DNA of 64,000 bases from Piromyces finnis finn (GCA_002104945.1 MCFH01000041.1:372001-436000), one strand, 5' to 3'. Positions 30,172 through 36,160 are shown, counted from the stretch's first letter. Translations and numbers: made by a program. Notes: generated by a model from the sequence alone, not told the origin.

Positions 30172-31751
30172 ATGTCCAAAGTATCAAATTCTAATTCAAC
30201 GTACTTATTATCATCTTCAAATCAACAATTAAATTCGGATTGGCAATCTATTCAAACAATACAACATACTATTCCATTAATATATAATAAAATTTCTATT
30301 TTTCAAAAAGATAATTCAAATATGTTAAAAAATACTTTAATAAATAATTGTATTAGTAACTCACCTCCAAAATCCAAAATGGCCATGCCAGAAAGTAAAT
30401 ATACTATTTTTAAATTTCATTGAAATTTATTTACCAATATAGATAATATAAGCAAAAAAAAATATCTATTATTAATTAATAATATGAGATTTTATATTAT
30501 TTTATATATAATTTAAAAAAAAACTTGCTAATATAATTTTGTTAATATAATGTTGTTATTATTATTATAAAAAAAGAAAAAGTCACCATAAGTGACTATC
30601 AAGTTTTGGATACCCTAGGTAAAGGTTCCTGTGGTTTTGTAAAATTAGCAAGGAGAAAATCAGATGGCAAAAATGTTATTATAAAATATGTAGTCAAATC
30701 TTTAGTATTAGATGGTTGTTGGACACGTGAAGATAATGTTAAAATACCAACTGAAATTCATATTTTAAAATATATTACTGAAAACTTCCCACATCCATAT
30801 GTTTTAAGACTATTAAATACTTGGGAAGATAATTATTATTATTATTTAGAATTTGATTCACAAAACTGTATAGATTTATTTGAATGTATTGATAACAGAC
30901 GTTTTACAACTGAAGCTCAAGTAAAGAAAATCTTTTATCGTATCGTTCAAGGTGTTCAACACCTCCATCATATTAATATTGTTCACCGTGATATTAAGGA
31001 TGAAAATATTCTTATTCGTGATGATGATACAGTTGAAATTATTGATTTTGGTTCAAGTGCTTACGTTAAAGAAGGTAAGAAATTTGATAAATTTTGCGGT
31101 ACTGGTGGTTACGCTGCTCCAGAAGTTCTTTCTGGTCAAAAGTATGATGGTCCACCACAAGATATTTGGTCATTAGGTATTCTTTTATATACTATGATTT
31201 ATGGTAGTAATCCATTCCGTACATTGGATCAAATTATTACAAGTGAAGTTCAATTCCCAGTAATTGTTTCTAGTGGATCCCATGATTTAATGTGTCGTAT
31301 GTTAAATCGTGATTTCCAAAAAAGACCAAATATCGATGAAGTTATAAATCATTCATGGTTTAATGACTTAACCGAAGAAGATAAACAAATACCTAAAAAT
31401 ACGAATATACCTATAGAAAATAGCAATGAAGAAATTGAAAATAATAAAGAAAATGAAATAAAAAAAATAGAAAAGATTGAAATCATTAAAAAAGAAGAAA
31501 TGGATAAAGATAATAGTATATCAAAAGTACATAGTGAGGAAGAAGAAGACATAACAGAAATGGATAATATATCTGTTGAAATTTTAACTCCTATGGAAAA
31601 TGAAAAAGAAATAGAATCAATAAAATTAGAGGAGGATGATAATGAGCTTACTTCAACAACATTAAATGAAGAATTAATAAAAAAATTAGATTTACATTCT
31701 GTAGTTTCTGAAGAATGTGATGTAAGAAGTGATAGTACTTTAGTGGATTAA
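30172..31751 (+). CDS. Ser/Thr protein kinase, CAMK group, PASK/Psk-like catalytic domain; exons 30172-30394 and 30583-31751
   Basis: GKGSCGFV, VIIKYV, HRDIKDEN, DFG, GTGGYAAPE and DIWSLG are present. The VIIKYVVK..V..CW....IPTEIHIL segment resembles PAS kinases. The in-frame splice gives MPE-ITISDYQVLDTLG. Confidence 0.85.
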
Positions 31752-32880
31752 AATTTAAAATTAAATTTCTTGGAAAAATTGTAAAAAAAATTAAAAAAAT
31801 TAATTTTAAATTTGTACCCACCACAAAAGTAGAAAAAATATCAATCCAAATAGAAATAATAAGAAAAAAAGTTCACTTTAAAGGAAAATAAAAGTAAAAC
31901 TAATATATTTCTTTACTTTTATTTTAATTTATATATATCCCCTTTTAAGCTTATTAAAACAAAAATCTTAAAATAACAACTACCTAATTATTATTTAGTA
32001 AATAGAAAATTTTTTAATTTATTTCAGAAATATAAAAATCGAAAAAAAACCAACAAAAAAAAATTATTTATATAGATTATAAATAGTATATAAAGGATAC
32101 ATTAATTTTTATAAAGTATAAAAAAAAAAAAAAAGTAAAAAAAAAATACATAAAAGAAGGAATTTAAAGTAATTATCTTTAAGATTTTATAATTTTTTAA
32201 ACTTTTTTTTTTTTTTTATTTAATAATTAATTTTTTTTTAGAAGAAAAAAATTTAAAAAAAAAAAAAAAAAGAAATGAAAAAAATATTATCAAAATAATC
32301 TTTTAAAATGTCTTTTTCTATTATTAGATAAGGATAAAAAAAAAAGAGAGAGAGATATTTAAATAATATTTTGTAAAAAAAAAAAAAAAGAAAAAAAGAA
32401 AAAAAGAATAAATATAATAATAAATATATATTCTTTAAATTTTTTTTAAACTCTCAAATAATCTTTTATTTATATATATATATATATAATATATTATAAA
32501 AGTTAAAACTTTTAAAATTACAAGAAAAAAAAAAAAAAAAGATAAATATAGAAAAGAAATATATATATATATATTATTAATGTTCTTATTTATGATTATA
32601 AAAAAAAAAAAAAAAAAAAAAAGTTGAAAAATATATATATATATATAAAAAGTTAAAAACAAATGTTAATTCAATTTATAATAAACTTTTAATAATTTAA
32701 ACAAAAGCATATGACTATAATAAAATAAAATACTAAGAGTTTAAAATTTTATATGTAAAAACTTTTTTTTTTCTGTTCATTTAGTTTCTGATAGTTTATA
32801 TTTTGATATAAAATAAATAAAAAGAAAAAAAAGTTTTATTTTTATTTATTAGTGAAAAAAATTAAGAAAATTAAAATAAA

Positions 32881-33417
32881 ATGGCAGCTATACCTGCACC
32901 TTTTGCTGTTTCAGGAGTATATGGAATTCCTTATGTGCTATTGCTGGTAGTGCTATTTATTTATTATATAAATTGAATGAAAATGGTATGTCTAATATTG
33001 AATACTTCCCTGAAGTAAAGCATATAAAATTTGATGAAGGATATACTGGTATAGATGATGATGACCTTGATACAATGATTGATTGATAAAATAGAAGAAA
33101 TAGAAATGAATACTGAAGAATATAAGGCTGTGAAAGATGGTCTTAATATTCTTTTTAACAATGAAAAGAATAAAGCTTTAGATGAAATACCAAATTCTAT
33201 AAAAAGTAAGGATGGGAAAGGTGTTGATTTAGAAGAATTTGATGAAAAAGTTGAAAAAACAAAAAGGAAAAATAAAAAAACAGGATGGTATATCGAAAAG
33301 GATAAAGGAGCATCTGTTAATAAACAGGCTCATGGTGGAAGTCAATATAAATTATTTAATTTTAAAGGCCAAAGAATTGCAACCCTTTCTGCCGATGGAA
33401 AAGTCTTAAGAAAATAA
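32881..33417 (+). pseudogene. Intronless, doubly frameshifted gene ending in a bacterial polymorphic-toxin-like (Ntox21/colicin E3-like) nuclease domain
   Basis: The C-terminus GWYIEKD...HGGSQYKLFNFKGQRIATLSADGKVLRK resembles bacterial toxin tips. Restoring 1 nt near 32936 and removing one TGAT at 33076-33087 gives a continuous ORF of about 178 aa from ATG 32881. Confidence 0.7.
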
Positions 33418-33585
33418 ATAAATATATATATATATAAAATTTGTTGAAATGAAATAAAAAAAAAAATTTTTTTTTTAAATATTGAAAATAAAATAAATAA
33501 AATTAAATTTAAAATGAAAATAAAAAAAAAAAAAAATGAATAATATATATTTTATTTTATTTTTTATTTTATTTAATGGTATTTT

Positions 33586-33634
<49 letters not shown>

Positions 33635-33668
33635 TTATTTATTTATTTATTTATTTATTTAATTATTT

Positions 33669-33721
<53 letters not shown>

Positions 33722-33785: not shown

Positions 33786-36160
<2,375 letters not shown>

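Follow-up and report, generated by a model that had tools for sequence, protein, structure and literature searches.

Positions 32881-33417 (+ strand) of a 64,000-nucleotide stretch of the genome of the anaerobic fungus Piromyces finnis (GCA_002104945.1, MCFH01000041.1:372001-436000; hereafter the window, meaning this whole stretch) contain a gene for a bacterial-type toxin domain. The C-terminal peptide of the product, KNKKTGWYIEKD...HGGSQYKLFNFKGQRIATLSADGKVLRK*, is the direct translation of 33265-33417 (+). A preliminary description of this DNA had treated 32881-33417 as one intronless open reading frame (ORF) of 178 amino acids. This does not hold, as two frame breaks interrupt the 5' third. 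Frame 1 opens at ATG 32881, in the start context AAAATG, and runs through 31 hydrophobic codons (MAAIPAPFAVSGVYGIPYV...) to a TGA stop at 32974-32976; this piece (32881-32976, +) is read as the frame-1 remnant of the original 5' end. The first break, from frame 1 to frame 3 (32935-32945, +), leaves no room for about 21 motif positions (GiGEvallATGaiivGG) that are present in relatives. The frame-3 stretch, AIAGSAIYLLYKLNENGMSNIEYFPEVKHIKFDEGYTGIDDDDLDTMID (32937-33084, +; ..AIAGSAIYLLYKLNENG...DDLDTMID), lacks a start codon of its own and is closed by two stops at 33085-33090. The second break, from frame 3 back to frame 1 (33075-33090, +), lies within the short repeat ATGATTGATTGATAAA, and the change of frame falls in ATGATTGATTGAT.

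Frame 1 reopens only over 33079-33417 (+), which is the sole open reading frame of the gene: 112 codons from TTG 33079, or 103 from ATG 33106, stop counted. P0001, the public gene call, takes the 103-aa version from ATG 33106, a start codon with A at -3. The 112-codon ORF is far beyond what chance would leave open, because none of 20,000 shuffles remained open (P about 6e-6) and the median stop-to-stop distance in the window is 6 codons. No single GT..AG intron that restores a frame was found in 32881-33417. Two-intron solutions were also considered and were rejected; these depend on weak splice sites and would remove most of the middle. In all searches the frame pieces were used one by one and never joined. 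Within the ORF, the helical linker EEYKAVKDGLNILFNNEKNKAL (33100-33180, +) aligns with the linkers of a ciliate homologue and of cassettes of the hydrophobic-segment type described below, and the 86-aa C-terminal toxin domain occupies 33157-33414 (+).

The relatives of this domain establish its identity. An exhaustive HMMER search of 1.84 billion representatives, at a threshold of E<=1e-3, returned 118 non-self clusters for the fungal domain, the best at 1e-16; among the matches listed, four, the query itself included, reach E<=1e-10. The matched part of the query is residues ~27-112, and in the relatives the match lies at the C-terminal end (for example 601-679 of 680, 916-986 of 987 and 1362-1428 of 1429). 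The exception is P0085 (1216 aa), where the match is internal to a beta-propeller-like protein; it is probably spurious and was set aside as a family member. Six long matches are RHS/YD repeat proteins, with the domain placed behind the Rhs-associated core, two matches have a HINT/intein-N domain, and many short members begin with MKK... signal peptides. The position at the extreme C-terminus, behind RHS/YD repeats and Rhs core, a HINT domain or a signal peptide, is that of a polymorphic-toxin C-terminal domain, and the corresponding proposal in the preliminary description is supported by these relatives, RHS and HINT proteins included. No LXG-type relative was seen.

The family is alignable throughout its conserved core. 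In the alignment A1 (118 rows; residue numbers are those of the 86-aa domain), K65 is invariant and F28, H59, G61, L66, R73 and G81 are at least 90% conserved. The fungal ORF retains every family-conserved residue. The D / HGG / K / R..T / DG pattern first noticed in the C-terminal peptide thus coincides with the conserved columns of a real protein family. Named carriers are Clostridium tarantellae, Caproicibacter, Eubacterium, Emergencia, Exiguobacterium, Rossellomorea, Lactobacillus and Bacillus plasmids, as well as some Neisseriaceae (a sheep omasum metagenome-assembled genome, MAG), Chromobacterium and Gilliamella. Database records label the family members hypothetical proteins, and none of P0001, P0120, P0004, P0121, P0009, P0005 and P0015 has a Pfam family on record. 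Scans of the fungal ORF against NCBIfam, PADLOC and PHROGs, together with a single-sequence PDB search, gave only coiled-coil or low-complexity noise, a word-based search of 5.8 billion proteins with the ORF matched only the ORF itself, and a search of phage records gave no homologue. Taken together, these proteins form a real family of bacterial polymorphic-toxin C-terminal domains for which no Pfam hit is recorded.

Structural comparison suggests which toxins this family resembles. When the A1 profile was compared with all PDB sequences, 4ntq_A (CdiA-CT of Enterobacter cloacae, CdiA-CT(ECL)) came first (E 0.0076, 33 positions). The alignment sets ..IekD....H..WKL...G.R.. on Y199-D227 of 4ntq_A, such that the D, H, WK and R of the family fall on D203, H207, W213-K214 and R222. 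The AF2 model built with A1 (pLDDT 89.8, pTM 0.80) has one helix and six strands, a predicted colicin E3/CdiA-CT(ECL)-like fold, and supersedes a mediocre single-sequence AF2 model (pLDDT 64). In Foldseek against the PDB, the comparison with toxin nuclease structures that had been proposed at the outset, 4ntq_A is again first (probability 0.85, E 0.24). VIA-align over 48,161 representative chains gives the same first match (Z 5.1, rmsd 2.6 Å, 56/76 residues), the sole one with Z>=5, and places ribosome-bound colicin E3 at rank 6. When VIA-align was rerun on the Foldseek list, ranks 2-5 were all colicin E3 RNase domains (Z 3.9-4.3). The ESM Atlas structure search reached an Ntox21 cluster at TM 0.53 (rmsd 2.1 Å, 55 residues), and the language-model neighbours in the same resource are bacterial toxin tips throughout. 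The fold is assigned because these scores, separately modest, agree across all methods.

In CdiA-CT(ECL), the active-site residues are D203, D205, H207 and K214, and the enzyme cuts 16S ribosomal RNA (rRNA) at A1493/G1494, as does colicin E3 (PMC9086364). In the toxin domain of P. finnis, Asp49 (EKD; 33301-33303, +) aligns with Asp203, His59 (HGG; 33331-33333, +; at least 90% conserved) with His207, and Lys65 (YK/WK; 33349-33351, +; invariant in 118 rows) with Lys214. The catalytic Asp/His/Lys set is thus present, and Arg73 (GQR; 33373-33375, +; at least 90% conserved) aligns with Arg222. From the fold and these residues we infer ribonuclease (RNase) activity on small-subunit rRNA. The Ntox21 signature reads K, [DS]xDxxxH, K, RxG[ST], RxxD (PMC3482391). 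Here, the D...H, K and R-I-A-[ST] elements are found, whereas the family lacks the second Asp and RxxD and spaces D and H differently. Because strict membership in both the Ntox21 and the colicin E3 Pfam families fails, the toxin domain is filed as a predicted sister family within the Ntox21/CdiA-CT(ECL)/colicin E3 fold. The preliminary assignment to Ntox21/CdiA-CT colicin-E3-like toxins is therefore upheld for the shared fold (by profile, Foldseek, VIA-align and ESM Atlas) and not for strict Ntox21 or colicin E3 membership.

The surroundings of the gene are those of the fungal host. The gene is present in a single copy in the 56.5-Mb genome (232 contigs; protein search and profile search) and lies about 405 kb into a 489-kb contig. 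One flank holds a eukaryotic Ser/Thr kinase exon (HRDIKDEN..DFG..APE; 30606-31751) and the other holds eukaryotic-looking ORFs. GC content over 32800-33400 is 24-29%, similar to that of neighbouring exons, as compared to 4-11% in the flanking spacers. The AAAATG context and host-like AT content pointed out earlier are thus real features of the gene. Its relatives are those of a bacterial gene. All named relatives are bacterial, mostly Bacillota; the best named relative is a Clostridia MAG at 66% identity. Gut Clostridia share 62-66% identity with the fungal copy over the toxin core, and 58% over 81 columns. In a careful tree of 66 rows the fungal row is sister to a Clostridia clade (support 88/83, unstarred), and its terminal branch is long (0.76-1.28 vs a median of 0.5).

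The related-locus scan for the fungal copy used 11 close rows. The scan of JGI metagenomes gave Clostridia-type human-gut contigs only and no further fungal copy. Searches of 5.8 billion and of 1.84 billion proteins, sets outside which the unannotated genes of other anaerobic fungi lie, gave no other fungal protein with the domain. The gene is integrated in host DNA and nested among bacterial sequences, and no vertical fungal relatives were found. With a bacterial toxin domain in a eukaryotic contig whose flanks are host-like, no origin other than horizontal acquisition is reasonable, and the toxin domain was almost certainly taken from gut bacteria by horizontal transfer, in agreement with the first proposal. 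The donor was most likely a Clostridia-like Bacillota, to judge from the sequence comparison, and is resolved no further than this because only 86-110 columns are available.

The 5' part of the gene can be interpreted by reference to the bacterial cassettes. A hydrophobic Gly-rich segment, with the consensus aaGvYfIPGiGEvallATGaiivGG...aGSW, is found 110-125 residues before the C-terminus in 17 bacterial-type clusters, and the ciliate homologue has it too; in one of these clusters, the RHS protein P0109, it stands just behind the core. This pre-toxin segment presumably resembles Pfam PT-TG. Searched with a hidden Markov model of the motif, the frame-1 piece 'FAVSGVYGIP' matches the segment start (E 0.035, a weak match, the strongest among 13 frame pieces); 'AGSAIY', from frame 3, weakly matches the segment end (worse than E 0.035), colinear with the first. 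About 11 nt separate the two fungal matches, as compared to about 21 codons in relatives. These colinear weak matches suggest that the first break may be an internal deletion of roughly 50 nt with a change of frame, and the fungal hydrophobic N-terminus looks, tentatively, like a decayed remnant of the bacterial pre-toxin segment. The preliminary description had this N-terminus replacing a bacterial delivery module. A conserved segment precedes the domain in the bacterial-type clusters and in the ciliate, so the fungal N-terminus would be a remnant of something already present in the bacterial cassettes, and not a replacement.

Two artefactual explanations bear on this reading of the locus. 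The stretch could be bacterial contamination or a chimeric assembly join, which would accord with the bacterial identity of the closest relatives and with their contigs, which are also very AT-rich (23% GC). Against this, eukaryotic genes and microsatellite-rich spacers of 4-11% GC lie on both sides, far inside the contig; neither a bacterial neighbour gene nor an immunity ORF is present; and protein identity to the nearest bacterium is only about 62-66%. A DNA sequencing run, probably from the source sample, further contains 1.00 of 68 sampled 31-mers over 32750-33480, which cover the gene and both junctions. Because every word sampled across both junctions is present in this run, contamination or a chimeric join is very unlikely, to the point that we give it almost no weight, and the concern over a bacterial-contaminant chimera raised in the preliminary description is answered. 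The same run bears on a second proposal, namely that both frame changes are assembly errors and that the real gene is one intact ORF of ~178 codons comprising segment, linker and toxin. Long-read assemblies of very AT-rich genomes do carry indel errors, and the three frame pieces are colinear with the bacterial cassette. However, because the run contains 100% of the sampled 31-mers, the breaks are probably not assembly errors, with a chance of ~5% that a given site was missed by all words. In addition, neither break lies in a homopolymer, and the first would need ~50 nt of missing motif, not a 1-nt slip. Assembly error is, on balance, quite improbable.

In bacteria, the toxin gene is accompanied by a possible immunity partner. 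A small ORF lies directly downstream of the toxin gene, or overlaps it, at the bacterial loci L003/L013, L008, L009, L030 and L031. L013 is a Clostridia MAG whose toxin and small-ORF pair recurs on L003, and L008 is an RHS locus adjoining phage lysis genes. The downstream ORFs of L003/L013 and L009 are homologous to each other (L013:355-876, L003:1311-1733 and L009:993-1472; 41% identity, E 1e-24), with no Pfam hit on record, and constitute a candidate immunity family for the toxin; L008, L030 and L031 have different downstream ORFs. The fungal locus has no immunity ORF, the DNA downstream of the gene being 4-10% GC and free of ORFs, and no homologues of the bacterial immunity candidates were found in the P. 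finnis genome. None is adjacent to the toxin gene on the ciliate chromosome. No signal peptide or delivery part was found on the fungal open ORF.

Several further arrangements of the family were observed. L009 (1-4989) is a rolling-circle plasmid with Rep_1 and Mob_Pre, on which a toxin with signal peptide is followed by a small ORF. The same arrangement is present on the small plasmid L029 (CP113384.1, 3124 bp). Three 3.1-kb Bacillus paranthracis plasmids of this kind originate from bovine milk, and the plasmid-borne proteins are labelled only as hypothetical. A signal-peptide toxin and downstream ORF on a small plasmid is a bacteriocin-like layout. At L004:720-1076, the 118-aa protein P0004 joins a glycosyltransferase-like N-terminus to the last ~50 toxin residues, and its toxin tip is identical to the Clostridia type; P0004 is either a displaced toxin tip left after cassette replacement or a metagenome assembly chimera. 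At the fungal locus, long (ATTT)n and (TAT)n microsatellites lie just downstream (33590-33720, 33947-34204). The (TAT)n tract is the source of poly-Ile and poly-Tyr 'ORFs' and lies inside a minus-strand gene, of which the exon at 33935-34100 ends in a carbohydrate-kinase-like NPLGAGD motif.

The third-best match, P0003, comes from a ciliate. It is an intact protein of 130 aa with the full hydrophobic segment; it has six close variants, is found on 19 metagenome contigs and is 55% identical to P0070 over its full length. The gene lies on DNA capped by (CCCCAAT)n repeats. L007:1-4728 runs from telomere to telomere over 4.7 kb and bears, besides the toxin gene, a full-length ABC transporter; in L005:1-810 and L006:115-911 an additional internal telomere-like tract comes right behind the toxin gene, owing perhaps to alternative fragmentation or to a join made by the assembler. 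Rumen ciliates have (CCCCAAT)n as their telomere repeat and gene-sized chromosomes in the macronucleus (bioRxiv 10.1101/2022.01.05.474053). Because the caps are this repeat, a second gut eukaryote, a trichostome (rumen-type) ciliate, carries the cassette.

Taken as a whole, the data suggest a history in several steps. A single-copy cassette would have been acquired horizontally from a low-GC gut bacterium, most likely of the Clostridia-type Bacillota, either as the cargo end of an RHS/HINT polymorphic toxin or as a stand-alone secreted or plasmid form. Its parts would have been the hydrophobic Gly-rich pre-toxin segment, the helical linker and a toxin domain of ~75-86 aa. This domain, which shares Asp, His and Lys with the four-residue active site of CdiA-CT and has the conserved Arg, would by its likeness to known toxins be a metal-independent endoribonuclease that cuts small-subunit rRNA in the decoding centre. 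After acquisition, an internal deletion with frame change would have struck the hydrophobic segment and a second frame change the region before the linker, leaving still open the 103-112-codon ORF with the entire toxin domain.

Transcription of the locus is probable. Of the words of 32750-33480 (731 nt), 69-85% are present in each of four runs, from three studies, that are probably RNA, and because this share exceeds what the 339-nt ORF could supply, the broken 5' part is probably included in the mRNA. Eleven upstream ATGs then precede ATG 33106. Because of this 11-ATG leader, together with the lack of a signal peptide and of an immunity gene, we favour the view that the fungal copy is a transcribed, eroding relic, or at most a weakly translated remnant, and not an operating secreted weapon; this is somewhat the likeliest state of the gene. 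The broken 5' part argues, with the same three features, against an active antibacterial weapon in this copy. A number of points weigh against the relic and its proposed history. The toxin ORF is fully open (0/20,000 shuffles) and keeps all conserved residues, which fits a functional truncated gene. The RNA label of the runs is a guess. Statistical support for relating the fungal hydrophobic pieces to the bacterial motif is weak. On the structural side, the scores are no more than modest (Z 5.1, Foldseek E 0.24), the PDB profile gives a borderline match (E 0.0076), the family does not conserve D205, the second Asp of the CdiA-CT site, and both the RNase activity and its target are deduced from the fold and aligned residues.

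These points lead to the competing proposal that the truncated gene still functions, the 103-aa protein being made from ATG 33106 and acting as an rRNase. We consider this possible, if clearly the less likely state. The 112-codon ORF is open where the median stop-to-stop distance is 6 codons, every family-conserved residue is kept, the locus is probably transcribed and the A at -3 of ATG 33106 is in place. The ciliate, moreover, retains an intact homologue without an adjacent immunity gene, and bacterial toxin domains are known in fungi and animals (PMC3482391). On the other side stand the eleven upstream ATGs in the likely leader, an open ORF without signal peptide or delivery part in a genome without an immunity homologue, the absence of an orthologue in other fungi among the predicted proteins searched, and the long terminal branch (0.76-1.28 vs a median of 0.5). 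The Asp-His loop of the fungal copy is also lengthened and of low model confidence. A functional toxin might, with similarly limited likelihood, hit bacteria (through release on lysis or at contact sites) or serve in fungal self/non-self or anti-parasite conflict, and it might be tolerated, a matter on which we are equally tentative, because fungal ribosomes are not attacked or because expression is tightly limited. A broader proposal, that fungus and ciliate each captured the same bacterial rRNase cassette without its immunity gene as a eukaryote-encoded antibacterial effector, past or present, appears doubtful. If true, membrane insertion or export would be the task of the hydrophobic segment, the working example would be found in the ciliate, whose intact copy occurs in many samples, and the fungal gene would be truncated yet active or recently disabled. 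The fungal and ciliate genes might alternatively have one eukaryotic origin, by transfer between rumen eukaryotes or from a common donor cassette, as opposed to two independent captures. Consistent with a shared origin, of 126 family members the seven ciliate variants are the only ones that the fungal linker helix matches (E 0.003), BLASTP aligns fungus and ciliate at 43% identity over 106 aa with the linker included, and a fungus+ciliate clade is not rejected in the approximately unbiased (AU) test (p 0.67), the constrained tree having a higher score than the quick free tree. The careful tree, in contrast, separates the fungus, with a Clostridia clade (88/83), from the ciliate, which groups with the P0070 type (91/70); the ciliate-P0070 identity (55%) and the fungus-Clostridia core identity (62-66%) are both closer than fungus and ciliate are to each other; and only about 86-110 columns are available. 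A single eukaryotic origin is on this evidence unlikely.

With the fungal copy read as a probable relic of horizontal transfer, the locus has three implications. An interbacterial weapon domain joins the list of genes acquired by anaerobic fungi through horizontal gene transfer (HGT), hitherto dominated by carbohydrate-active enzymes (CAZymes) and metabolic enzymes. A sizeable toxin family is defined, of at least 118 clusters at 50% identity and with no Pfam hit on record; its fold and active site are credible, it occurs in RHS, HINT, secreted and small-plasmid forms, and a candidate immunity family goes with it. Finally, the intact ciliate copy and the fungal copy make the deployment of bacterial rRNase toxins by gut eukaryotes testable by ordinary expression assays.

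Among known systems, CdiA-CT(ECL) (4NTQ chain A, the prototype of Ntox21, PF15526) is the closest, ranking top by profile, Foldseek and VIA-align. Like the domain described here, it is a small toxin tip at the C-terminus; it is paired with an immunity gene, for which the bacterial loci here have a candidate. Several features set the two apart. Asp205 of CdiA-CT(ECL) has no conserved counterpart here; the carriers here are RHS, HINT, signal-peptide and small-plasmid forms, mostly from Bacillota, and not CdiA/T5SS (type V secretion system); and the domain here includes an extra N-terminal helix and an 'IPxxLK..VDLxKF' strand region. The published Ntox21 motif is only partly matched (PMC3482391). 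The RNase domain of colicin E3 (PF09000; PDB 1E44, 1JCH, 2B5U, 4V5K) shares the fold region (Z 3.9-4.3, 56-57 residues). The layout found here, a short N-terminal helix and a six-stranded sheet, is one that we take to fit this domain. As with colicin E3, the family has plasmid-borne bacteriocin-like relatives, here with a candidate immunity gene. Colicin E3 is absent from the PDB profile matches at E<=10, with no detectable sequence similarity; Lys stands in place of its catalytic Glu517, as in CdiA-CT(ECL), and its translocation and receptor domains have no counterpart here.

Toxin domains domesticated by eukaryotes provide a further comparison. The amidases of the tae-to-dae transition (Chou et al. 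2015) have reportedly been domesticated in ticks and others. The present gene resembles such cases in that an interbacterial domain stands alone in a eukaryotic genome, without immunity gene or delivery apparatus, and differs from them in that part of the fungal copy is broken. Fungi have at least 13 polymorphic-toxin domains, and bacterial toxin domains have been taken up by both fungi and animals (PMC3482391). With the HGT genes of Neocallimastigomycota, the gene shares a gut-bacterial (Bacillota) donor, the lack of introns and a near-host composition, whereas the transfers reported for this group are mainly CAZymes and metabolic genes (bioRxiv 10.1101/487215; PMC11291939). The putative toxins reported for Neocallimastigomycota in the literature searched are ricin-type lectin modules only, and the words 'toxin', 'colicin' and 'bacteriocin' are absent from the text of bioRxiv 10.1101/487215. 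Neither this domain family nor these recipients, an anaerobic gut fungus and a trichostome ciliate, turned up in the literature searched. What is new here, as compared to these systems, is the toxin family itself, colicin-E3/CdiA-CT-like and with no Pfam hit on record, together with its recipients.

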